Sequence record: PQ309151.1 | Length of the DNA stretch: 64,000 bases | Reading direction: 5' to 3' (one strand) | Part shown: positions 5,285 to 62,187 of the stretch, piece by piece | How the letters are laid out: every line of letters starts with the position of its first letter | Position numbering within the stretch: position 1 is the first letter of the stretch | The notes under the pieces: generated by a model | What the model was told of the DNA's origin: nothing | Database searches by the model: none | Seen by the model: only the letters and a program-made list of their open reading frames with translations | Translations under genes and position numbers: made by a program

Positions 5285-8200
5285 TTACAGCGAACAGCCT
5301 TCGCATTCCATGTGACCATCGCCACCGGTTTGTTCAGTCTGGAACGTGATGCCTTCCAACCCAGCCAGTTCTTCGCTATGTGCGAGAGCAGCAGCTGCGG
5401 CTGACGCCACATCAGCTGCCGAATGGGCAGACTTCGAGATCTTCATCGAGTCTTCCGAGCCAGGCATGAGTGTGTTGACGTAGTAGCGCGTCTTCACGCC
5501 CTTTTCCACACGGTCCATTTCCGCTTCCATGATTTCCGTCGAACTGACTTCCAGGCGGTTCGTAAAGTCCAGATACCAGTCGGCCGAAATCGACTGATCG
5601 CAGAACTTCTGCGGAATCGCATAGATGCTGTTCTGTTCCGGCAGGGTGAGTTCCCACATGCGTTGGTACAGATACGCAGGATCGTCACCGTACGGTGCGG
5701 CCCAACGCAGCATGTTGTTCGCATCGCCCTTGAGCAGCACGAGTTCGCGAATGCCGTAGATGCTGTTCGTTGCACCCAATGCTTTCGACGAGCTTTCGCC
5801 CGGCATGAAGTTGATCAGGCAGCTGTGTGCCAGACCACCATTTGCCTTGATCTGCTCGGACACTTCGTCCCAGTCATGCTGGTATTCGAAGTTTGCCAGC
5901 GAGTCGACCTTCTTGCGATAGGTCTTGAGCGGCGTCCAGCCATCGGGCCACTTCGTACGCTGAATCCACGGAGCCAAACCACGTTCCTTGGAGATAGCGA
6001 GTGAAGCCTGGATTGCGTAGTACAGATGACGCTCGTACACGCGGTGGAGTTCTTGCAGACCCTCCGTCGAGTTGAACTTCAGACGCTTACGCGCCATGTG
6101 CGTTGCGACGCCCATCATGCCGACGCCAGCGTTCATGCGAGCCTTCGCAGTCACGCCCATGTGCGGCAGGATGTATTCGTTTTCGAGGATACAGTAGTCG
6201 ATCATCTTGTACGCGTAGTACATGACGTCTTCATACTCAGCGTCCGACATCTCTTCGGTGATGTTGGTTGCAGCCAACGAACACAAAGCGACTTCCGGTT
6301 CCTTCTTGACGGAGACGACGTGCGTCACAGTCAGAGTACCGTATGCTTCGGTGTAATGCTGGTGTCCCACCTTCACCGACTGAGCAACCCAGCGACCATT
6401 CGGACCCGACACGACTTCCGATGCTTTCGTGTTGACTTCGTGTTGCATACCGTCGATCGATTCGGCGATCCAGTGAGCATGACCCACTTCGACTTCCGAG
6501 AACAGATCCTTCATCGCGTCTTTGCCGTCGTACGGCTGAGTCGGTTCCGATACTTCCAGACACTGACCCGTGACGATGCCGTTGAACCATGCACGATGAC
6601 GCTTCGGTTCGTTGAAGCAGTACACTGAGTTCTGAACGCCGAGGTCTTCCACGTCCAGAATGCGAACGTTGTTCAACGGATCCTTACCCGGATGCTGACT
6701 GAACGGAGCAAGGACATCGCCCTTCTTCAGTTCATGAGTACGGACTTCGGTTTCCAGACCATCGCGCATCACATACCACTTGTGATAGGCGGTGCAATCC
6801 AGGTAACCCTTGCCGTCAGTCACGTAAACGCGCAGGAGCTTCTCCAGCGGGCTCGTCTGACGAACGGTCACCCGAGTCCATTCATAGCCGTTCCAGAGCT
6901 CTACGTTGCGATCTCGGTACTCGGAGATAGCACGTACGCCATCCTTCGTCAGGATCTCGGTGCCAGGAGCGACACAGAGGTTCGACGAATGGATCGGATC
7001 CAGGAACGGCGTGTTGCGGTTCATCTCGTCGATGGAGGCCGCATAGATCGTGCCGGTCTGAATACCTTGCTGGACTGCATGGACGATGAGGTCACGTGCC
7101 GGAGCGTAGGTCTTCTTGTAGTTCGGATCAGCTTCGTACTTCGCATACAACTTGGCGAAAGCCTGGATGTCCGGACCATAGAACGCTTCGTGAAGATCCG
7201 GTGCGTTCTTGATGTTCCACGAGAAGATGTCTTCACCCTTGGCCGCTTTCATGGTCAGGAAGCGGTTCGACATGTACGCATAATGCGCATCACGGTTACG
7301 GGCCGTGTCTGACGCACGCGTATCACGCAGGCCGGCGATGACCTTGGCTTCCGGATCGAACAGGTTGAAGTACAACGTACCCGCACCACCACGACCACCC
7401 TGCAGATTCGCACGGATGTTCTTGCCGAAGGTGGCGATATACGGCAGCTTGCCGCGATGAAGGAAACGACCCTTTTGAACCGGGTCACCGATGGAACGTG
7501 TCATCAGGTTCGTACCGATACCTGCGGACTGCGTCGTCATCATGTATGTGATGTGGTCTCCGGCTGCCAAGCTCCAGCGGCTGTCACCAACCGCGATCAG
7601 GCAGCAGCTTGCATACCCCTTGTGGTACGTGCCCAGGTTATTATAATTGGGCGTCGGTGCCGACAAACGTTTGTTCGAGAAGTGGCGATAAATGCGGATC
7701 ACGTGTTCGAGACGCGAGCGCTTCATCTTGTCTTCGTTCTGCAATGGATAGCCCGGCATCGTTTCCGGTGCCGATTCGAACAGAGCCATCGCCATGCGCA
7801 TGTAGATGAACTGCGGAGTCTCGTATTCCGTACGGGAAGAGAAATCCTGCAGCGCATACTTGAAGCGCAGCTGTTCGATCGCGAAGTGGGGATACGTCAG
7901 ATCCTGGTCATGGTTGACCGTAGCTTCGATGACGCTCCATTCGTATTCGCTGTATTCCAGCTTACGAGCAAGACCTGCCTTATGCAGGCGATCTTGAACT
8001 GCACGGACCAGAGGCAGTTCTTTCGTACCGAAGATTTCGATACGATCCAGTACAGCACGCAGTCGACCTGCCATCAGGTAGTGCGACCACGTATCACGCG
8101 CGAGCAGCGTGTCGATGAGTTTCTGCATCAGACGCTGAACGGTTACCTTCTTGGGAAGGTCGCGGACCGTTTCGAGAGCGATGCTGCTCCACTCGTCTTC

Positions 8201-8293
8201 AGCGACGCCGACGGCGTCCTGTACCCAGTGGTTCAGCTTCTTGGCGTCGAATTTTTCTTCTTCGCCCTTGAGGTTGATGACTGTTTCAATCAT
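5285..8293 (-). CDS. nrdA: ribonucleotide reductase class Ia alpha subunit, intein-containing
   Basis: ATP-cone-like N-terminus, SAPTPN, YASCCL, SSNL|C...CLEV, EVALCSLA, FMPGESSS, KTRYYVN, C-terminal CEGC. Likely start MIETV at 8293. Confidence 0.95.
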   Translation of the reverse strand: MIETVINLKGEEEKFDAKKLNHWVQDAVGVAEDEWSSIALETVRDLPKKVTVQRLMQKLIDTLLARDTWSHYLMAGRLRAVLDRIEIFGTKELPLVRAVQDRLHKAGLARKLEYSEYEWSVIEATVNHDQDLTYPHFAIEQLRFKYALQDFSSRTEYETPQFIYMRMAMALFESAPETMPGYPLQNEDKMKRSRLEHVIRIYRHFSNKRLSAPTPNYNNLGTYHKGYASCCLIAVGDSRWSLAAGDHITYMMTTQSAGIGTNLMTRSIGDPVQKGRFLHRGKLPYIATFGKNIRANLQGGRGGAGTLYFNLFDPEAKVIAGLRDTRASDTARNRDAHYAYMSNRFLTMKAAKGEDIFSWNIKNAPDLHEAFYGPDIQAFAKLYAKYEADPNYKKTYAPARDLIVHAVQQGIQTGTIYAASIDEMNRNTPFLDPIHSSNLCVAPGTEILTKDGVRAISEYRDRNVELWNGYEWTRVTVRQTSPLEKLLRVYVTDGKGYLDCTAYHKWYVMRDGLETEVRTHELKKGDVLAPFSQHPGKDPLNNVRILDVEDLGVQNSVYCFNEPKRHRAWFNGIVTGQCLEVSEPTQPYDGKDAMKDLFSEVEVGHAHWIAESIDGMQHEVNTKASEVVSGPNGRWVAQSVKVGHQHYTEAYGTLTVTHVVSVKKEPEVALCSLAATNITEEMSDAEYEDVMYYAYKMIDYCILENEYILPHMGVTAKARMNAGVGMMGVATHMARKRLKFNSTEGLQELHRVYERHLYYAIQASLAISKERGLAPWIQRTKWPDGWTPLKTYRKKVDSLANFEYQHDWDEVSEQIKANGGLAHSCLINFMPGESSSKALGATNSIYGIRELVLLKGDANNMLRWAAPYGDDPAYLYQRMWELTLPEQNSIYAIPQKFCDQSISADWYLDFTNRLEVSSTEIMEAEMDRVEKGVKTRYYVNTLMPGSEDSMKISKSAHSAADVASAAAAALAHSEELAGLEGITFQTEQTGGDGHMECEGCSL
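6563..6976 (-). mobile_element. 138-aa mini-intein in NrdA (no homing endonuclease, C-terminal Gln)
   Basis: Begins CVAPGTEIL, has block B CTAYHKW and block F VYCFNEPKRHRAWFNG, ends IVTGQ before the +1 Cys. It interrupts the NLCxE active-site motif. Confidence 0.92.
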
Positions 8294-8309
8294 GTCAGGT
8301 CCGATTGAG

Positions 8310-8555
8310 TTAAGCGGTTGCTGAGTGTGCCCGGACAATCTTGGTGAAGTTCTGCGGCGTGAAGCCCGACATCCATTCACCGTTGTCTTCGATCACCGGC
8401 AGCTGACGAAAGCCCTTCTCACGCAACATCTGAGCGGATTCAGGCTGCTCTTGGATGTTGATTTCCTGATATTCGATGGCTTTGATGGACAAAGCCTTCT
8501 TCAGGTTCTCGCAATTGGGGCACGAATTGCTGCTGTAGACGATAACAGGGCTCAT
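8310..8555 (-). CDS. glutaredoxin / NrdH-like redoxin
   Basis: IVYS...CPNC...INI...GFRQLPVI...WMSGF thioredoxin-fold pattern, directly upstream of nrdA. Confidence 0.9.
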   Translation of the reverse strand: MSPVIVYSSNSCPNCENLKKALSIKAIEYQEINIQEQPESAQMLREKGFRQLPVIEDNGEWMSGFTPQNFTKIVRAHSATA

Positions 8556-8735
8556 TTTCAAATACTCCAGGGTACTACTTCAGTTAATCGAAGGTGGTGC
8601 TAATTTTTAACGCATTTCGAAAATTGCGAACATAGGTCCTTGCCCTCCAGACGACTCAAAGTCCGTCTGGAGTACGCATTTTTTGAAATGTGTTTTCTCT
8701 CTGTCCAGAGTATAAAAGACCAAAAAAAATAAAAT

Positions 8736-8763
8736 TATCAGAGTGGGGAAAGCCACTCTGATA
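8736..8763 (-). terminator. intrinsic terminator
   Basis: 11-bp stem TATCAGAGTGG/CCACTCTGATA, with an adjacent A8 run (U-tract on minus). Confidence 0.75.
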
Positions 8764-8777
8764 CTATATTTGAGGTC

Positions 8778-9356
8778 TCAAACGTGACGCTCAAATTGGT
8801 AAAAACGACTGGTCAGAGGAGTAACAACACTCATAACGACCTTGATTCGACAGCCTGTTCCATGACGGGCGACGTCGTATAGTTTTGGATCCAGCAGATG
8901 GTCACCGGCAGTCGTCTGAATGTAGAGTTTGATGTTGTTGCGGACTTTATTCTTCTTGATGTCGATGAACGTTCCATGCATGAAGTAGAACTTCTGCTTG
9001 ATCACGTCTAGTGCATCGTGAACTTTTTCGTCAGTGGGTGGTCTGGAGAGCCAAACGGTCGTCTGATACAATACTGCCATGTGACGAATCGCGTGATTAA
9101 CCATCCATTTGCGCTGATACTGCAACCCTTTCACCATCTGGATGACGATTTGCTCGACGATCTCTAATGTCTCCGGATCATATTCGATCGAGTGCTTCTT
9201 GGTCAGAACCTGGTTAGTTGTTATCGCTAGGTGAAACTGTTTCTCGATGAACCGCATTGCAATCCAGTATCTGAAGAGCAGATTGGAACATTTAAGTGCG
9301 ATATAACCTGACATCAAACCAAAACAAAACAAAACGAATTGTCCAAAGACTTCCAT
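8778..9356 (-). CDS. hypothetical membrane-anchored protein
   Basis: GAGGA SD; hydrophobic N-terminal segment FGQFVLFCFGLMSGYIAL. Confidence 0.7.
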   Translation of the reverse strand: MEVFGQFVLFCFGLMSGYIALKCSNLLFRYWIAMRFIEKQFHLAITTNQVLTKKHSIEYDPETLEIVEQIVIQMVKGLQYQRKWMVNHAIRHMAVLYQTTVWLSRPPTDEKVHDALDVIKQKFYFMHGTFIDIKKNKVRNNIKLYIQTTAGDHLLDPKLYDVARHGTGCRIKVVMSVVTPLTSRFYQFERHV

Positions 9357-21934: not shown

Positions 21935-22102
21935 TTACTTGCTCTTTTTAGCTGCCCTGCTTTTGCTGATGTGGGCTTCAATCCGCTTATCTTCTTCCAT
22001 CAGTTTGCGGGCTTGCTCCTGGGTCATGTGGTGCCGTTTCGCAATATCCTCATTGTGAGCGGCTGCTTGAAACAACTTCCTTTGACTCGGTGTATACGGC
22101 AT
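21935..22102 (-). CDS. small basic phage protein (MPxxS/T-xxQ...AAAHN type)
   Basis: MPYTPSQRKLFQAAAHNEDIAKRHHM. Start is GAGGAG-TTTTAAA-ATG at 22102. Recognised from memory as a widespread phage family of unknown function. Confidence 0.75.
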   Translation of the reverse strand: MPYTPSQRKLFQAAAHNEDIAKRHHMTQEQARKLMEEDKRIEAHISKSRAAKKSK

Positions 22103-22199
22103 TTTAAAACTCCTCAAGAAAAAGTGGGACCGACTTCTTGGAGTAAGCCGGTCCCTCGAACTTGCCAGGCTGAGGCTCCCGGCAATCCTTTACTTACTG

Positions 22200-23243
22200 C
22201 TACTGCTGTTCGCCATCCGGACCCGGATAGTCGATCATCGACTTGCGAATTCCATCTTCATTGACTGCAGGCGTCATCAGGTGGTCAACAAGCCCCTTCT
22301 TGAATTCCGCCACGAAGGCTTCAGGCGACTGATCGCTCGGTTTGAACTTGAAGAACGACGCGTCGACGTAAAGGTCGACAATGCGGGTGATGTTTTCACG
22401 ACGTTGCGCCAAAGCACGCGATTCGGAAGTATTGCCGTTTTCGTCGATCAGGGCGAAGTAATGTTTGTCGCCACGATGCTTGATTTCAGCCGCCTTGAAC
22501 TCGAACTCCTTGGGCATCCTGGAAGGAACCAGATTGCGTTCCACGATCCTGACCGTGCCGCCGACCAGCAGTTCTTGCAATTCGACTTCCCACGGACGAT
22601 CCTGACGGTTCGATTCGTACTCTTGTTCATTCCAGGTGACATGGATGCCCAGAGCCTTCATCTTCTCTGCGATGATGCCGCACAGAGCTGACTTACCCAC
22701 GCCTGTACGACCTTCGACGACTACACGGATATCGCCGCCGTTCAGGTAATCGCGCGACATGCCCAGATGGCCCATCACTGCAACGGTCCAGGCAACAGCA
22801 CCGTCCCAGATAACACGAGCATTCGCCGTATCGTAGTGGCCGTACTTGCCAGCCTTGTGCTTGTCTGGATGCTTGAAGTCGTAACGCTGTACGTCTTTGA
22901 TGAAATTCTGACGCAAAGCGAATGCTTCGAACGCCTGGGAATCGTCGACAATGATGTCCGGACCCATGTGAACCAGACCGACCTGCCAACCATACGGCTC
23001 GACCTTGACGCCGAGTTCCTTGCTGATGATCTTCGCTTCACGAACCGCCGCAGCTTCGGTTTCGTAATCGCGGTTATGAACCGCCATGCCGTTTTCATGG
23101 CGCGTATAGATACCGTAACCCTTGGTTTCCTGATCCGCACCTTCCATCTGGATTTCGATGGAGCCTTCGGGCGAACCATCTGCCACGTACTTCCACGGTG
23201 CGACTTGAATAGCGATAACTTTGCCCAGATCTTTGTTCGACAT
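22200..23243 (-). CDS. mosaic protein with P-loop-like segment
   Basis: IRVVVEGRTGVGKS Walker A. Start MSNKDLG at 23243; the track start 23306 lies in a terminator hairpin. Confidence 0.7.
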   Translation of the reverse strand: MSNKDLGKVIAIQVAPWKYVADGSPEGSIEIQMEGADQETKGYGIYTRHENGMAVHNRDYETEAAAVREAKIISKELGVKVEPYGWQVGLVHMGPDIIVDDSQAFEAFALRQNFIKDVQRYDFKHPDKHKAGKYGHYDTANARVIWDGAVAWTVAVMGHLGMSRDYLNGGDIRVVVEGRTGVGKSALCGIIAEKMKALGIHVTWNEQEYESNRQDRPWEVELQELLVGGTVRIVERNLVPSRMPKEFEFKAAEIKHRGDKHYFALIDENGNTSESRALAQRRENITRIVDLYVDASFFKFKPSDQSPEAFVAEFKKGLVDHLMTPAVNEDGIRKSMIDYPGPDGEQQ

Positions 23244-23272
23244 GTTGTAACCTTTTAAAAAGAGACATAGAC

Positions 23273-23302
23273 ATAGACAGATGCCTTCGGGCATCTGTCT
23301 AT
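23273..23302 (-). terminator. terminator hairpin
   Basis: 13-bp perfect stem ATAGACAGATGCC/GGCATCTGTCTAT. On minus the 3' arm ends TAT and continues GTCTATGTC. Confidence 0.75.
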
Positions 23303-23316
23303 TCACTTATCGACGA

Positions 23317-24543
23317 TTAGTCGTTGCTTTGCGGTTTACTGCGGACGATGCGCTTGGCAGCCGGCTTCTTGACAGGAGCCGATGCACGCGATGCAGCCTT
23401 CTTCGCCACCGGAGCCTTGGTGGTCGTGGACGATGCGCCGCCTTCGCCCAGCAGCGTCACCTTGTAGCCGAACTTCTCGGCGACGAACTGCGCTTGCTTC
23501 TGGTTCAGCCTGGTCGACATCATCGGGTTCTGCACGCCCGAACCCGCCACCATGCGGATGAAGAGAGCATGTTCGACCACGCCGAGCGAACGCATCAGTT
23601 GTTCAACCTTGATGGTCTTCGGAATGTCGATCGTCGGTTGCTTCTTGCCGACGCCAGCCAGACGACTGATCGCCTTCTTCAGTTCCGAGTCAGGCTTTAC
23701 GGCCATCTTGGACAGGTCCAGCTTCGACACCGGCGAAATGCCAACTGCCGCACTCGTCGGAGCAACAGTTTCCGACGAAGCCAGCGAAACGTCCAGACCC
23801 GACATCACAGCCATACCGGCTCCAGAAGACGACGAGATATCAGCACCGCCTTCGGTCTGTCCGCCTTCTGCGAAGCCCGCCATGGCCGTTTTAAGCCCTT
23901 CTGCGAACGTTCCTTGCTGGCCTTCGGTCAATACCTTCGTGTCTTTGAAGATCACGACCACGACCATGCCCAGCGGACCGACTTCCATGTACTGCACGCG
24001 GTCGACGTTTTCCGGATTTTCGTTGGCGTTGCCTTCTTCGACGCGAATGATTTCCTTCTGCTTCGTATCGTAGCCGACCCACACTGCCTTGGAGCTGACC
24101 TTGTGCAAGCCGTCGGATTGCGAAGCCTTCGGATCCGGATCACGGGTCGTGATGTCGTGTTCGACAACGAGACGACGCTTCCAGTACGAGACCGGAACTT
24201 CGACCGGCGTGTTGCTACCTTCTTCCGGTTCCATCTTGACCGAACGGATGGTCGGCGGGAAAACTTCGTTGACCATCTTGCCATTGATGAGTTCGAACAT
24301 CATGGCGTAATGCGGTTCCTGCGCCGAGCGAGCCTGGCCGTGGAAGACCGTCGGTTCGTCAGAGTTGAACGCGATTGCGTATTGCAGATACGGCAGTGCC
24401 GCGCCTTCTTCGCGGCCGATCGTGGTCGTGAGTTTCAGGCCCTGACGCAGGCAGGCAAAAGCCAACTGTTGCTGCATCGAGACGACGGTTGCGAATTGGC
24501 CGGTGACTTCCGGGGTGTTGGCGTTTTTGTTCAGGCTTTTCAA
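23317..24543 (-). CDS. hypothetical protein with C-terminal IF2-N-like domain and Lys/Ala-rich tail
   Basis: IPKTIKVEQLMRSLGV...MMSTRLNQKQAQFVAEKFGYKV resembles the IF2 N-domain repeat. Tail KAPVAKKAASRASAPVKKPAAKR. Strong GC3 bias. Confidence 0.7.
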   Translation of the reverse strand: MKSLNKNANTPEVTGQFATVVSMQQQLAFACLRQGLKLTTTIGREEGAALPYLQYAIAFNSDEPTVFHGQARSAQEPHYAMMFELINGKMVNEVFPPTIRSVKMEPEEGSNTPVEVPVSYWKRRLVVEHDITTRDPDPKASQSDGLHKVSSKAVWVGYDTKQKEIIRVEEGNANENPENVDRVQYMEVGPLGMVVVVIFKDTKVLTEGQQGTFAEGLKTAMAGFAEGGQTEGGADISSSSGAGMAVMSGLDVSLASSETVAPTSAAVGISPVSKLDLSKMAVKPDSELKKAISRLAGVGKKQPTIDIPKTIKVEQLMRSLGVVEHALFIRMVAGSGVQNPMMSTRLNQKQAQFVAEKFGYKVTLLGEGGASSTTTKAPVAKKAASRASAPVKKPAAKRIVRSKPQSND

Positions 24544-24554
24544 GGTAATGCTCC

Positions 24555-24887
24555 TCAGTTTTGATAGTGCAGGTCCGTCAGGCGAACGTATTTTTCGATG
24601 AACTGTTCGTCCGTGAGGATCTGGGTTGCTTCTTCAGTCACGACGATCCAGTCGCCCTTCTTGCAGAGGACGATCTGGTCATCGATCTTGAATTCGAGCT
24701 CAACGACAGGCTTGCCGATGAGACCAGTGAGTTTGCGGCTGGCGAGATGTTTGCAGAAAAGGAAGGGAATCTCGTCAGCATAGCCACGGTAGCGGAAGGC
24801 ATACACCTTCTGAACCGTCTTGGGGACGAAAGCATATTTCAGCATTTCGTCCTCTTCTTTCGTTGTCAAATAACGTTCTTGAGACAT
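24555..24887 (-). CDS. hypothetical protein (GDWIV / PGDYG-like family)
   Basis: ...CKKGDWIVVTEE...ILTDEQFIEKY pattern common in small phage proteins. Confidence 0.6.
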   Translation of the reverse strand: MSQERYLTTKEEDEMLKYAFVPKTVQKVYAFRYRGYADEIPFLFCKHLASRKLTGLIGKPVVELEFKIDDQIVLCKKGDWIVVTEEATQILTDEQFIEKYVRLTDLHYQN

Positions 24888-25114
24888 TACTCTCCCTTCA
24901 AGGGCGGAACGGTTTGATATTTGGCCAGATCATGAACGTACGTCAATATCTGGTCGTTGAGGCCGTGCAGGTAGTACATCAGAAAGACTGTACAGACCAT
25001 CACGATTGCGCCGCATGCGCTGATCCGCTTGCGGAAATACAACTCGTTGCAGAACAATACGAGACTGGTCAGCAACAAGAACCCGAGTGCGATGATGGCG
25101 AAGACTGCTAGCAT
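24887..25114 (-). CDS. small membrane protein (2 TM)
   Basis: Two hydrophobic segments separated by ELYFRKR. AGGAAG SD. First gene after the promoter at 25193. Confidence 0.75.
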   Translation of the reverse strand: MLAVFAIIALGFLLLTSLVLFCNELYFRKRISACGAIVMVCTVFLMYYLHGLNDQILTYVHDLAKYQTVPPLKGE

Positions 25115-25192
25115 TTTCCACTTCCTTTCTAATAACTCTTATCAACGGATTACGGACGCCAATTGCTTTTTATCTACAGGTTCATCACGTAA

Positions 25193-25214
25193 GTAATATA
25201 TCTCCGAAATAAAC
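25193..25214 (-). promoter_or_regulatory. phiKZ-type early promoter (exact TATATTAC)
   Basis: Minus strand GTTTATTTCGGAGATATATTAC, preceded by a C(UUCG)G hairpin at about 25231-25246. Confidence 0.75.
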
Positions 25215-25252
25215 TGCATAGCAACATACAGGGAGCCGAAGCTCCCCGTACG

Positions 25253-26263
25253 TTAGAACAGATCTTCAGAGAACAACGGCACAACTGCAACGCGAAAACC
25301 ACCCCAGCCAGCATCCTGATCTCGCAGAATACCACCCATCTTTTCTTCTTCCGGATGGAAAGCTTTCTGCTCATGCCGACCGAGATTCACAGCCATCTCA
25401 GGCGTGTCGACAATCATTCGGTTGTCAAGTGCCATGAGCATTGCACGATAGCGCGTAACGAAGTTGCCGTGGTTCGTCAGAAAACCCTGAATGATGCCGT
25501 CGTGACTACGACCAGCAACTGCTTCCTGGAACTCCTGAGACTGCAAAATGTGATGATGGCGATGTGGACGATCGACGTACCACACCACACCATCAAGATA
25601 ATTAGCAGCCGCAATCGGGTATTCGTTATCGATCGTGTTCGTCGCTTCCACTGCACGAACGATCGCCGAACCATAGTCACGCAACAGATTGAAGTTCGTC
25701 GAACTGAAGATCGCATTGCGCAGTTTGTGAAGAAGCGATACATCACTATCGTTCGGACTGAGTTCGAAGATCGTAACTTGCATCGCCGATTCAACGATCT
25801 GTGACCATTGGGTGTTGCCCTGAGTCCACTTGCGAGGACCTGTCACGATCGAGACAACCGCGCTGTCCAATTTCCAGAACACGCAGATGTAAAGAATGTC
25901 ATAGCCGAACAACTCACTACTCACCACATCCTTCCATTGCGTGCCGTCCATGATGACGAAATCTCGCCCGCGCTTGGTCGGATTCAGTTCCAGGAAATTA
26001 CCCAGGAACTGGACTGCACGAAGACACAGTTGTTCCGTCGTCTGAGGATTCACCTCGTAGACAGGACTCGACAACCCTTCGAGCCGATAGACGTATTTCG
26101 ACGCATGGACAAACCGGTAGATCAGTTCGCTTACCTTCGGACCCATTCCGACATTACCCGACGGGTTAGCTGCCCAATGACCAGCAGTTCCAGCCGGGTA
26201 ACGGAAGCTAGTCTTCTTTACGATTCCGCGTATCGGCATCGAGGTGGAGTTGTTTTGCGACAT
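25253..26263 (-). CDS. hypothetical protein with C-terminal RH...QGFLT...LFSEDL phage domain
   Basis: C-terminal PHRHHHIL...QGFLTNHGNFVTRYRAM...LFSEDLF motif of a widespread phage family, fused to about 200 extra N-terminal residues. Confidence 0.75.
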   Translation of the reverse strand: MSQNNSTSMPIRGIVKKTSFRYPAGTAGHWAANPSGNVGMGPKVSELIYRFVHASKYVYRLEGLSSPVYEVNPQTTEQLCLRAVQFLGNFLELNPTKRGRDFVIMDGTQWKDVVSSELFGYDILYICVFWKLDSAVVSIVTGPRKWTQGNTQWSQIVESAMQVTIFELSPNDSDVSLLHKLRNAIFSSTNFNLLRDYGSAIVRAVEATNTIDNEYPIAAANYLDGVVWYVDRPHRHHHILQSQEFQEAVAGRSHDGIIQGFLTNHGNFVTRYRAMLMALDNRMIVDTPEMAVNLGRHEQKAFHPEEEKMGGILRDQDAGWGGFRVAVVPLFSEDLF

Positions 26264-26792: not shown

Positions 26793-28217
26793 TTAAGCGC
26801 GGAGGAAAGCGTTCATGCCGTAGAACTTCAGTTCCGGGCCGAAGATCTGCGAGATCGTGCCGATCTTCCAGCGGTCAGCAGGATGGATCTTGGCGATGAA
26901 CTCGGGATCGCTCGGATGCGAACCACCATTGGACATGGAGTCCATGACGAAGCGGCTCTTGATTGCCGGACGATGCTGGTTCAAGTTGATCATTTCCAGC
27001 GTACCAACGAGCGAGTCGATGATCGAACGCGACCAGCATTCGATCGGAGTCGGCACGTTCGAGTCGTCAGTCAGATCTTCCAGCCACTTGAAACCGACGT
27101 CTTCGAGTTCTTCTTCGTTCGTACGGATCTCGCAATCGGCCGGAACTTCGATGCCGATCATCATTGCCAGGTGAGCCTTCTCGACGTCGCCCGAAGCGTA
27201 ATCCAGGAAGAATGCAGTGCGTTGGTGCAGCCATTGTTCCGGCGTCATCATTTCAGCTTGCGCCGACGACTCGATGATGCCTTGAACACTGATGGCGAGT
27301 TCCAACGATTGGCTCGACTGGAGGTTCGGCGGGAACGTGATGAGGATTTCCTCACGTCCTTCACGGAACACGTTGTTCAGGATGCCAGACCAGAAACCTT
27401 CGACCAGCATACGGCCCGAGAATTCCTTGTCGAAATTGCCCTTCGTGCGACTGCCGAACTTCGCTTGCATCGACAAGAAGTCGAGCGGATTGATGTGACC
27501 GCCGATACCGATCGAGCAACCGCCTGCCAGACGTTCTTCGCCGACGCCCTTGCCGCGCTGATACACGAAGATCTGGTAGCGCTTGCCGACCTTCTTGTAG
27601 AAGACGATGTACGGCAGCAGCTGGACGTAGCGAGTATCCTTCTCGCACCAGCCGCGACGAATGAAGTTCAGCGCCAGATAGATCGCTTCGTTCAGTTCGT
27701 TCGGACGCACTTCTTCTTGCGGCACCATCGTCATCATGTCGATGAGGTCACGCGCCGAAACAGCCAGCACTTGTTCGACGGGCTTGTCCTGGCCCTCGAC
27801 CGAGCTCACGTAGTCGGAATAGTTCGGCAGGCGGCCGAAATCGTGTTCTTTCATCAGGTCATGTTCGACCGGCGGCTGTTCATCGACCATCAGCGGGATC
27901 TGGTTCGGATAGAGCAGCGTGCCGAACTTCGGAACCGGCGCGAGATCGTCGAGAATCTGTTCGCCGAACTGGTTCTTGAAGCCGAGCGATACTTGCCCAC
28001 CGATCGGCGTGACGACTGCGTTTTCGTCGTCACGCATGGAAGCTGCACGACGGATGACTTCGAGCTCGACCGGCATGAGCGGTACGTAGGAACGAGCCGA
28101 CAGCGGCGGTGTTTGCGGCGTTTCGATTTCGTCGAGTTGATTTGTAGCGGGCGTGATCAGAACGCGGGTATTCAGTTCTGCAGCTTCTGCTTGGTCGAAT
28201 TTGTCTTGCAGAGACAT
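26793..28217 (-). CDS. NUDIX-family hydrolase (COG4112/YmaB-like) with extensions
   Basis: EKDTRYVQLLPY...YQRGKGVGEERLAGGCSIGIGGHIN...REGREE...VEKAHLA. 474 aa with strong GC3 bias. Confidence 0.8.
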   Translation of the reverse strand: MSLQDKFDQAEAAELNTRVLITPATNQLDEIETPQTPPLSARSYVPLMPVELEVIRRAASMRDDENAVVTPIGGQVSLGFKNQFGEQILDDLAPVPKFGTLLYPNQIPLMVDEQPPVEHDLMKEHDFGRLPNYSDYVSSVEGQDKPVEQVLAVSARDLIDMMTMVPQEEVRPNELNEAIYLALNFIRRGWCEKDTRYVQLLPYIVFYKKVGKRYQIFVYQRGKGVGEERLAGGCSIGIGGHINPLDFLSMQAKFGSRTKGNFDKEFSGRMLVEGFWSGILNNVFREGREEILITFPPNLQSSQSLELAISVQGIIESSAQAEMMTPEQWLHQRTAFFLDYASGDVEKAHLAMMIGIEVPADCEIRTNEEELEDVGFKWLEDLTDDSNVPTPIECWSRSIIDSLVGTLEMINLNQHRPAIKSRFVMDSMSNGGSHPSDPEFIAKIHPADRWKIGTISQIFGPELKFYGMNAFLRA

Positions 28218-43513: not shown

Positions 43514-43801
43514 TTACGAGACGAGATAACGCGGACCGAGAAGATCATGACACTGACTGGGCGTGAACTTGAGGATTACGTGAGCCAGCCAGTATGCATG
43601 CGTGTACCAGGTATCCGAATGCGACTTCTCGCTTTCGACGTATTCCTTGTACTCGTCTTCCAGGATTCCCGAACTCAAGATCGAGATAAGCTCGTTGCGC
43701 TGAGTCGGACTACCATTCGTCAGAAACCCAGCATCTACCAGGTAATGTGCTTGGTCGCCCAGACTCAGCGCCGCGAATTCCTCTTTGGTAAGAATCTTCA
43801 C
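43514..43801 (-). CDS. hypothetical protein
   Basis: AAGGAG SD; 95 aa. Confidence 0.7.
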   Translation of the reverse strand: MKILTKEEFAALSLGDQAHYLVDAGFLTNGSPTQRNELISILSSGILEDEYKEYVESEKSHSDTWYTHAYWLAHVILKFTPSQCHDLLGPRYLVS

Positions 43802-43810
43802 GGCATCTCC

Positions 43811-45055
43811 TTACGCTTTGGCGAGTTCCGCTTCGCCGACGATGCTGGCGTACTGGTCGTTGGTCATCTGGAAGATGACGCGAGCGATGTACAGCGCCTG
43901 CGTGATCTTCTCACCTTCGTCCAGCGTGTCGTTCAGGTTCTTGTACGGCTCGGCGAGAATGCCCGAATTCAGAACCTTCTTCACGAACGGCCATTGCGCC
44001 GGATCGGCGATCTTGCGCTCGACGGACGCCAGATACACGCCCTTGTCTTCGTTCGACAGTTCTTCGAACACCGATGCTGCCAGCACGACCGTACCCAGTT
44101 CAGCAATGCGTTGTGCATCGCGAGCATCCGATGCGATCTGCGCAGCTTGCGGAGCCGTCAGCGTATCGCCAGCGAAGTCGTCTGCCGGAATTTCGACGTT
44201 CAGGTCGACCGTGTTGGCCTGAGGCGTTTCGACGATCTCGTCTGCATGGAGATCGAACTTCGTCGGTTCAGCGATTTCCGATGCCGGGTTCTGGGGAGCA
44301 GGCTGTTCCTTCTTGGCCTTTTCCTTCTTCTTGCCCACGGCATTGCCGTTGTTGAACTTCTCGCCGAGAGCTTGCAGGCCCGCGCCGACGTAGTTCTTGA
44401 ACTGGCCGTCTGCGAACGTCAGCTTCGGATTGAACGCGAGTGCCGGCAGGTTCTGCTTGATCTTCGACAGGATTTCCGCTTGCAGGCGATCGGGGCCAAT
44501 GAAGTCTGCGAGATCGACGACAGGCGAGACGATCGTGAATTCGAAAGCTTGATCAGCGTCGCTGCCTTCCTTCAACCAGAGCTTGCCCTTGATGCCGTCG
44601 ACCTTCGGGCCGTTCTGCACGCCGCGGATGGCGTTGAACCACACGAGGTTGCCCAACGGAACCTGGATCGTTTCGACGAGCGGCTTGTTGCGGCCATGCG
44701 AGACCGACGAGTAGTCGACGCGGTTCGTGTTCAGTTGCAGCAGGTTGCGAAAGAGCGTGACCAGCTGGCTTTCCGACGGGATCGACGGCGCTTCGGTCAG
44801 ACCGTAGTGGTTCTTGAACGAGTCGCTGTTGACGAGAGCTTGCAGCGCGTTCGCGAGCTTCGCGGTCAATTCCTTCAGGTTCTTGCGATACTTCTTCAGC
44901 TCTGCCAGGTTGCGATGCAGACGCCAGTGAGCGACTTCACCGTTGGGCAGCTTGACGGCGCCCGAAGGCAGGTCAGCGGAGAGCGTGTTGAAGATCTTCG
45001 GCAGCGGCAGGAACTGGATGGTTTGGCCGTCGACGGTGCGTTGGAGTTTGCTCAT
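43811..45055 (-). CDS. hypothetical protein, probably highly expressed
   Basis: 414 aa with MCP-like extreme GC3 bias. Folded N-terminal part, Lys/Pro/Ala linker, acidic C-terminal part. Confidence 0.8.
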   Translation of the reverse strand: MSKLQRTVDGQTIQFLPLPKIFNTLSADLPSGAVKLPNGEVAHWRLHRNLAELKKYRKNLKELTAKLANALQALVNSDSFKNHYGLTEAPSIPSESQLVTLFRNLLQLNTNRVDYSSVSHGRNKPLVETIQVPLGNLVWFNAIRGVQNGPKVDGIKGKLWLKEGSDADQAFEFTIVSPVVDLADFIGPDRLQAEILSKIKQNLPALAFNPKLTFADGQFKNYVGAGLQALGEKFNNGNAVGKKKEKAKKEQPAPQNPASEIAEPTKFDLHADEIVETPQANTVDLNVEIPADDFAGDTLTAPQAAQIASDARDAQRIAELGTVVLAASVFEELSNEDKGVYLASVERKIADPAQWPFVKKVLNSGILAEPYKNLNDTLDEGEKITQALYIARVIFQMTNDQYASIVGEAELAKA

Positions 45056-61602: not shown

Positions 61603-62187
61603 TTAAGAGCCAAAGAGGACGCGAAGGGTGAAAAGCATGTCGCTCAGACCATCCCGTTGTCCCAGCCAGCTACGCAGGAAGTCCCGGATGAGGACGGGTT
61701 CGTTGTTATACCGGCCGAGCAGGTATTCGCGCGTGGCAACTCCGATCGTCCAGGCATTGTGCTTACCGATGTCCAGTGTGTCCACGTAGATCATCGGATG
61801 GTACTTCCGGAAACCCGTATACACGTAACAGACCGTCTCGTCAACGAAGCGGTTCTGCATCGTGTCAAAATATGGGTTGTGTTTTTGTTTTTCGATCCAT
61901 TCGTTGATGGTCAAGGTGCCGAAAGCGCCGAGGGCTGAGCGATACAGGCGTTCGCGAAATGCGAAATCCCGCTTGAGCAAGTCCTCGTGCTTCGTGATCT
62001 CTTTCCAGAGTTCCTCGATGTCCGAATTTGGAGTGATGTCGTTTGCTTCCGACTCCAAAGTGATACGTCGAGTTGCAGCACCTATAAGATCCACCTGAAT
62101 GGGTTTGTTGACCTGAGCCTTACGGTACTCGATGGGTGCACCGAGAAAACCGTTCGGATAGAGTTTCAACCCACCGAAGATTTTCAT
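61603..62187 (-). CDS. conserved head-region protein
   Basis: TAATG coupling; ITLESE site; lies in the gp89-93-like block. Confidence 0.7.
   Translation of the reverse strand: MKIFGGLKLYPNGFLGAPIEYRKAQVNKPIQVDLIGAATRRITLESEANDITPNSDIEELWKEITKHEDLLKRDFAFRERLYRSALGAFGTLTINEWIEKQKHNPYFDTMQNRFVDETVCYVYTGFRKYHPMIYVDTLDIGKHNAWTIGVATREYLLGRYNNEPVLIRDFLRSWLGQRDGLSDMLFTLRVLFGS

Follow-up and report, generated by a model that had tools for sequence, protein, structure and literature searches.

How do nucleus-forming jumbo phages pass their exported mRNAs to the ribosomes of the host? For this hand-over, one export-facilitating factor (ChmC) and one tight ribosome binder (PhiKZ014) have been named (PMC12908238), and the locus analysed here may bear on the same question. 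Within the window, by which we mean the whole 64,000-nucleotide stretch, a sequence-only reading had picked out a 408-aa open reading frame carrying, near its C-terminus, a segment that resembles the N-domain of translation initiation factor IF2. It had proposed a captured ribosome-docking module that delivers the N-terminal part of the protein to initiating ribosomes. Here we ask whether the module is what it resembles, what family the protein belongs to, and what role at the host ribosome might follow.

Source genome and gene

Positions 22000-26000 of the window are 100% identical to Ralstonia phage RsoM3USA (PQ309151.1, 225.6 kb), and window position 1 is record position 62001. RsoM3USA is a Chiangmaivirus of the nucleus-forming family Chimalliviridae; its nearest relatives are RSL2, RSF1, FLC6/FLC8 and SURPRISE13, and its genome encodes PhuZ and multisubunit RNA polymerases. 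RSL2, RSF1, FLC6 and FLC8 have been placed in the genus Chiangmaivirus of the Chimalliviridae, and S13 (SURPRISE13) was presented as a novel phage related to these four (PMC11898562). The gene of interest, ACEO27_00094, is present as a single copy in the RsoM3USA genome. Its counterpart by orthology in RSL2 is ORF129, and it falls in phrog_36087, which is annotated 'unknown function'; the genes on either side, scanned with Pfam and PHROG, likewise gave 'unknown function' alone. No tRNA genes were found in the window, and none of the genes concerned is broken. The gene and its ribosome-binding site lie as follows:

23317..24543, minus strand: whole gene ACEO27_00094, 408 codons plus stop, TTG start
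24551..24556, minus strand: Shine-Dalgarno sequence GAGGAG, 7 nt upstream of the TTG, overlapping the stop codon of the upstream gene

Given this GAGGAG and the conservation, in homologues that start with ATG, of the 22 residues preceding the first internal Met, we regard the TTG start as genuine. The codon bias of the gene (Nc 34.8) ranks fourth by strength among the 48 CDS in window positions 1-49000, against an Nc of 29.5 for the major head gene. The suggestion that codon bias points to high expression thus holds in relative terms, as a reasonable though indirect argument, and together with the strong Shine-Dalgarno sequence it indicates that the product is probably abundant.

The sequence-only reading had also linked the protein to a start-proximal box, TTTTAAAA. 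The box itself is real and enriched, with 13 copies against 0.55 expected, 10 of them located 0-20 nt upstream of minus-strand start codons. No copy lies upstream of ACEO27_00094, however; the one closest to it (23253-23260) goes with the gene that follows downstream, and we reject the link on position.

Architecture of the protein

A high-confidence AlphaFold model of the 408-aa protein was built from a 41-sequence alignment and has a mean pLDDT of 79.5. It divides the protein into the following parts:

23860..24543, minus strand: N-domain, residues 1-228, predicted to begin with a long helix and to continue as a beta-rich alpha/beta domain
23695..23859, minus strand: linker, residues 229-283, Gly/Ser/Ala/Thr-rich and disordered, pLDDT <50 (AlphaFold)
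23446..23694, minus strand: short conserved helix (residues 287-296) and IF2_N-type module, from AlphaFold and profile comparisons
23446..23637, minus strand: core of the IF2_N-type module, residues 303-366 (64 aa), pLDDT 93-97
23320..23445, minus strand: basic tail, residues 367-408, disordered, Lys/Ala/Pro-rich, net charge +8

The N-domain is predicted to be ordered from about residue 10 to residue 228, with pLDDT mostly >90. The peptide quoted in the sequence-only reading is present as described: window positions 23455-23631 on the minus strand (residues 305-363) translate to it, the peptide proper spanning residues 307-362. Its flanks were also correctly recognised, since a Gly/Ser/Ala linker does precede the module (G/S/A/T make up 53% of residues 229-283) and a histone-like tail does follow it (48% K/A/P over residues 367-408). 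The linker varies in length and is poorly conserved across the family, and the tail ends in a conserved KPQ(S/T)ND motif. The module core is predicted to adopt a beta-alpha-alpha-beta-alpha-beta topology (E-H-H-E-H-E), and with its preceding helix it carries a net charge of +7. Neither the protein nor its family gave a Pfam match to the G domain, domain II, C1 or the fMet-tRNA-binding C2 of IF2. Judged by its sequence, the protein is not an IF2 (infB); of that factor it has the N-terminal type of repeat and nothing else.

The module is a diverged IF2_N domain

Pfam sets the gathering score of IF2_N (PF04760) at 25.3 bits. The 408-aa protein and four sub-pieces of it gave no Pfam match at E<=10, to IF2_N or to any other family, and the only close orthologue to reach IF2_N, P0004, does so with 15.2 bits (E 0.018), which falls short of the gathering score. 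The Pfam comparison that was to decide the matter is therefore negative for the RsoM3USA protein itself and positive for its more distant orthologues. When 1.84 billion representatives were searched exhaustively with a profile, 33 proteins that share the N-domain were obtained, and in 3 of these 33 the equivalent C-terminal region lies at or above the Pfam IF2_N threshold:

P0019: three IF2_N repeats, 81.6 bits, E 3.4e-23
P0017: two IF2_N repeats, 56.5 bits
P0020: one IF2_N repeat, 25.7 bits

P0019, like the family member P0024, is encoded at the syntenic locus of a related jumbo-phage contig, where the flanking genes stand in the same order as those of the window and are 35-70% identical to them. 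An HMM built from the Chiangmaivirus-type modules alone picks out, in P0017 and P0019, the canonical repeats where Pfam annotates them. Comparison by hhalign of the module core with the canonical repeats and one real IF2 gave a probability of 96% (E 4.7e-9) over 55 columns, against a probability of <=0.89% in 20 column-shuffled controls. When the 41-sequence family profile was run against all PDB sequences, the best match was P. aeruginosa IF2 (E 0.0022), on its N2 sub-domain; IF2 was reached with this profile alone, a 14-sequence profile having returned noise. Single-sequence searches are weak throughout. Against PDB sequences, phmmer with the protein or the module returned noise (for example Mn-SOD at E 0.4-0.55), and pairwise BLASTP of the module gave E 0.2 for P0019, E 26 for P0017 and E 0.33 for P0043, a real Chloroflexota IF2 that had been retrieved with the P0019 repeats at E 2e-3 from a 5.8-billion-sequence database. 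In the hhalign comparison of the family with P0043, the match (E 0.0026) is confined to the IF2_N domain of P0043.

The predicted fold leads to the same place. For two AlphaFold models made from different alignments, the top Foldseek match in the PDB was 7uiu, whose entry describes the 'N2 sub-domain of IF2 bound to the 30S subunit', with probability 1.00, target TM 0.63-0.65, rmsd 2.3-3.1 Å and identity 28-29%. Two further IF2 chains, 7unv_x and 9h9h_Y, fall within the top 10. With the 41-sequence model all three are matched at probability 1.00 and rmsd 2.3-2.9 Å over 63-66 columns, and the shallower-alignment model has the same top matches. The E-values of these matches are modest (5e-3), as the domain is short. 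Among known structures, the modelled fold of the module is closest to IF2 N2.

Because the repeats of the orthologues, the profile comparisons and the predicted folds agree, we conclude on the combined sequence and model evidence that the module, though diverged, truly belongs to the IF2_N family and is homologous to the N1/N2 repeats of IF2. The earlier identification is thus upheld, with the qualification of divergence. The idea that the module was captured from the host, at least recently, finds no support here: identity to the P. aeruginosa N2 is about 29%, and the one real IF2 retrieved with the P0019 repeats, which is their best match, comes from Chloroflexota and not from Burkholderiales.

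A mosaic family around a constant N-domain

The N-domain is the constant element of the family: P0022, a C-terminal fragment, is the only one of the 42 collected proteins that lacks it. The remainder of the protein is a mosaic. IF2_N-type modules occur in 17 of the 42, in 1-3 copies, and a helical 'module B' of roughly 100 aa occurs in 12, in one or two copies; P0019, P0020 and P0027 have both kinds. Orthologues at the same locus may thus carry 1-3 canonical IF2_N repeats, module B, or both. Two close relatives of the RsoM3USA protein, P0010 and P0011, have unrelated sequence in place of the module, and P0024 is without it, from which it follows that the IF2_N module is dispensable for the core role of the family. 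A strongly basic tail, with at least 9 K+R in the last 40 residues, is present in 25 of the 42. Modules exchanged like cassettes at a syntenic locus would suit an adaptor with its core activity in the N-domain and its targeting in the C-terminal modules.

The N-domain itself has no Pfam, PDB-sequence, PDB-fold or BFVD relative outside its own family. Foldseek against PDB and BFVD gave no credible match except the RSF1 orthologue; weak matches to T7 Gp1.2 and to dsRBD were not placed on any region of the protein. We also considered whether the N-domain might be a diverged form of ChmC, the mRNA-binding Whirly protein of chimalliviruses (PMC11077065), and rejected this. Against an alignment of ten ChmC orthologues, including Goslar gp176 (accession from PMC11077065), hhalign gave a probability of 0.3% (E 0.2), and RsoM3USA encodes a separate ChmC orthologue elsewhere in the genome, at record positions 168655..169422 (E 7.3e-35); on these two grounds the N-domain is not ChmC.

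A possible adaptor for the host small subunit

In P. aeruginosa, the N2 sub-domain anchors IF2 on helix 16 (h16) of 16S rRNA, with an extension that wraps the h16 minor groove, and N2 with its extension buries about 1173 Å2 (PMC9192638). In the 30S initiation complex of E. coli, N2 (residues 295-370) is attached to h16 near uS4 (PMC12820379). That IF2 N2 binds helix 16 is what makes the idea of ribosome docking a reasonable one. For the residues that make this contact, we compared the phage family with P. aeruginosa IF2, in which Ser277-Val278-Lys279 form the main contact and Arg259 is a further contact residue. In the alignment of the family profile with P. aeruginosa IF2, Ser277-Val278-Lys279 map to the loop between helix 1 and helix 2. 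Since this loop varies in length and sequence within the phage family, the h16 interface of IF2 cannot be transferred to the phage module; since it also differs between the real IF2s seen, the comparison does not discriminate. Nor is the fold alone proof of 30S binding, because the N1 repeat of IF2 has the same fold as N2.

By analogy with IF2, then, the module may dock on host ribosomes, and the +7 charge of module and helix, followed by the +8 disordered tail, is compatible with RNA binding of the N2 kind. The joint reading that we tentatively put forward, and to which we give a probability somewhat short of even, is a modular adaptor in which the IF2_N module and the tail bind host 30S rRNA and tether the N-domain near initiation; the adaptor family would be specific to a clade of nucleus-forming jumbo phages with genomes of roughly 220-230 kb. 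The steps can be set out as follows. The IF2_N module and the basic tail would bind structured RNA of the host small ribosomal subunit, at a site analogous to that of IF2 N2, namely helix 16 on the 30S shoulder adjoining uS4, with the extension in the minor groove. The N-domain would thereby be tethered to host ribosomes at or near initiation, possibly in competition with the N2 anchor of IF2 itself. The outcome would be translation shifted in the phage's favour, or ribosomes concentrated locally. There is precedent in the chimalliviruses for abundant ribosome-binding proteins, namely PhiKZ014 and Churi gp335 (PMC10914614, PMC11849849). A more specific version, which we think distinctly unlikely, is that the phage makes a partial initiation-factor mimic, with 1-3 N2-like modules per protein occupying the helix-16 site of the 30S subunit, displacing or supplementing the IF2 anchor and bringing the orphan domain to the mRNA-entry side.

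Alternative explanations

The resemblance to IF2_N might in principle have arisen by chance or by convergence, the domain being small and helical, and be void of evolutionary or functional meaning. The missing Pfam match of the 408-aa protein, the weak BLASTP values against canonical repeats (E 0.2-0.33) and the Foldseek E-value of 5e-3 speak for this. Against this stand the Pfam-significant IF2_N repeats at the same position in syntenic orthologues, the profile-profile probability of 96% where shuffles reach at most 0.89%, and the convergence of independent sequence and fold searches on IF2 N2; we consider the explanation largely refuted and very improbable. A weightier alternative accepts the IF2 ancestry and holds it uninformative on the target: the product would bind DNA in the manner of a histone, in the phage nucleus or in the virion, with a tail that coats DNA and a three-helix module serving as a DNA-binding domain of the winged-helix kind. 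Lys/Ala/Pro tails also bind DNA, and the PAKKA-type tails of Ralstonia and Cupriavidus proteins such as PhaM, which bind nucleoid DNA, offer a lead in this direction. The K/A/P tail (48%, net +8) is kept across members with differing middle modules, one family member has a weak Pfam match to the histone H1-like HC2 (E 0.28), and in codon bias ACEO27_00094 resembles structural genes. In P0019 and P0020 the IF2_N repeats also match HTH_Crp_2 (E 0.001), MarR, Rv2175c_wHTH and HTH_11, but every one of these matches lies below its Pfam threshold, and the best sequence and structure matches of the module are consistently to IF2 and not to HTH proteins. We found no entry for the product as a virion protein in the open texts and supplements searched. 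On balance we judge a DNA-binding role unlikely.

One may also read the protein as a general RNA-binding or condensate-forming protein for phage mRNA, active for example in stabilisation or post-export hand-over, which would act by way of its tail, linker and IF2_N module with no specific ribosomal site, and be an analogue rather than a homologue of ChmC. In architecture it does resemble ChmC, with a globular domain that leads into long disordered stretches and a charged tail, the repeats of the orthologues are multivalent, and the codon bias makes high expression likely. RsoM3USA, however, already has a ChmC orthologue of its own, to which the N-domain is unrelated, and general RNA binding leaves the specific likeness to the 30S-anchoring N2 unexplained. 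We regard this explanation as quite improbable.

Comparison with known systems

The likeness of the phage module to IF2 N2 lies in its similar size (a 64-aa core), in a beta-alpha-alpha-beta-alpha-beta/three-helix-bundle topology (PMC9192638), in collinearity over 55-65 positions at 28-29% identity, and in the basic, flexible sequence that adjoins it. The differences are equally clear. The phage protein has neither the G domain nor the tRNA-binding C2 of IF2, and its module sits at the C-terminal end of an orphan protein; the RsoM3USA module falls below the Pfam threshold, the loop homologous to the h16-contact loop is unconserved, and the basic extension is C-terminal and of the Lys/Ala/Pro type.

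With the early proteins PhiKZ014 and Churi gp335, the latter of which clusters around the phage nucleus (PMC10914614, PMC11849849), the ACEO27_00094 product shares its origin in a nucleus-forming jumbo phage, a probable abundance and a possible affinity for host ribosomes. The target of PhiKZ014 is on the 50S subunit, where it clamps 5S rRNA, while the module described here points to the 30S shoulder, and ribosome binding is proven for PhiKZ014, whereas we infer it for the ACEO27_00094 product. No PhiKZ014 structure appears among the best 50 PDB/BFVD fold matches listed, nor did one emerge from the PDB sequence searches. With ChmC (PhiPA3 gp61/PhiKZ gp67/Goslar gp176) the product has in common a chimallivirus origin, a globular nucleic-acid-related domain, a long disordered C-terminus and a role that may lie between the export of mRNA and its translation (PMC11077065); the ChmC tail, in contrast, is Asn/Gly-rich and then acidic, whereas that of the ACEO27_00094 product is basic. 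The tail also recalls the histone H1-like and AlgP-type Lys-Ala-Pro tails of Burkholderiales and Pseudomonas in composition and disorder, with the weak HC2 match in one member; this likeness is compositional alone and has no bearing on whether the target is RNA or DNA.

Novelty and significance

The IF2_N domain and ribosome-targeting phage proteins are both already known. In the full-text literature searched, IF2_N is described solely as a part of IF2 and in no phage protein; the searches also yielded neither data on RSL2 ORF129 nor an account of the ACEO27_00094 family. Relative to that literature, what is new is a syntenic jumbo-phage family in which IF2_N repeats are fused to an orphan domain and a basic tail. 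The analysis provides the first domain assignment for phrog_36087 and for the hypothetical proteins in all 11 matching phage records, which come from Chiangmaivirus-type jumbo phages that infect Ralstonia and Burkholderia; some of these phages are under study as biocontrol agents.

The family also shows viruses putting a component of the initiation machinery to a second use. The analogy with IF2 makes the family a concrete candidate for 30S targeting in nucleus-forming jumbo phages, with a precise hypothesis for the site, h16/uS4. Were the initiation-factor mimic to prove true, the phage would re-programme or spatially organise the translation of its exported mRNAs, possibly including those with short TTTTAAAA-type leaders, and the C-terminal modules swapped between phages would be host-adaptation cassettes.

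Modular architecture of the family

The N-domain of the target protein is well conserved in its metagenomic relatives P0010 and P0011, whose identity to the window protein, taken across the full alignment, is 53% and 52%. At residues ~300-430, however, both carry an unrelated segment of ~130 amino acids in place of the IF2_N-type module, a segment without a Pfam match that sits between the conserved N-domain and a basic tail like that of the window protein. Judged from these alignments, a conserved N-domain and the same tail around an unrelated segment show that a recent module exchange took place. Part of the family also shares its extreme C-terminus:

Window 23320..23340, minus strand: KPQ(S/T)ND motif, final seven residues of the target protein

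The motif is kept in seven family members and occurs in variant forms (SND, KTQTND) in two others, and this conservation, variants included, takes in P0010 and P0011 despite their unrelated middle module. KPQ(S/T)ND may be a short docking motif.

Among 1183 ORFs, an HMM for module B (~100 aa), derived from proteins related to the target, gives weak matches to two adjacent genes (E 6.5e-6 and 1.6e-4), and the 414-aa member of the pair ranks second in the window for strength of codon bias (Nc 32.0):

Window 43517..43801 and 43811..45055, minus strand: phrog_34631 gene pair

Start codons and upstream boxes

Codon 23 of the target gene (window 23317..24543, minus strand) is an in-frame ATG (Met23-Gln24), invariant in 14 of 14 close homologues, and no Shine-Dalgarno sequence is present at this ATG. 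The RSL2 orthologue is annotated from an internal ATG:

L002 (RSL2, NC_028950.1) 8001..9164: RSL2 ORF129, 387 aa

Upstream of that start (record 129950-130016) lies the coding sequence for a conserved N-terminal extension of 22 residues, and because the tblastn match reaches record 130016, covering this extension, the annotated start is probably wrong.

A palindromic 8-nt box is strongly enriched in the window, with 13 copies observed against 0.55 expected:

Window 3189, 22102, 23253, 29701, 30550, 32799, 34749, 35406, 36361, 36941: TTTTAAAA boxes

Ten of the 13 copies precede a minus-strand start codon by 0-20 nt, frequently in the context c-TTTTAAAA-tGAGGa...ATG, and at two sites the box directly abuts the ATG. 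The motif probably marks a phage promoter, a transcription start or a short leader.

Neighbouring and related genes

Five genes upstream of the target gene lies a strongly codon-biased gene (Nc 34.4), whose product is kept syntenic with the target gene in the related loci L003 and L004 (45-46% identity):

Window 26793..28217, minus strand: 474-aa protein, phrog_37383/phrog_8902, function unknown

A ChmC HMM recovers a further RsoM3USA protein (E 7.3e-35), outside the window; tblastn with Goslar ChmC as query gave no Chiangmaivirus match:

PQ309151.1 168655..169422 (L019:43656-44423): ACEO27_00189, 255 aa, phrog_3284

By profile homology, ACEO27_00189 is the ChmC orthologue of RsoM3USA, and module B, from its matches to the phrog_34631 pair, may be a more widespread phage domain.
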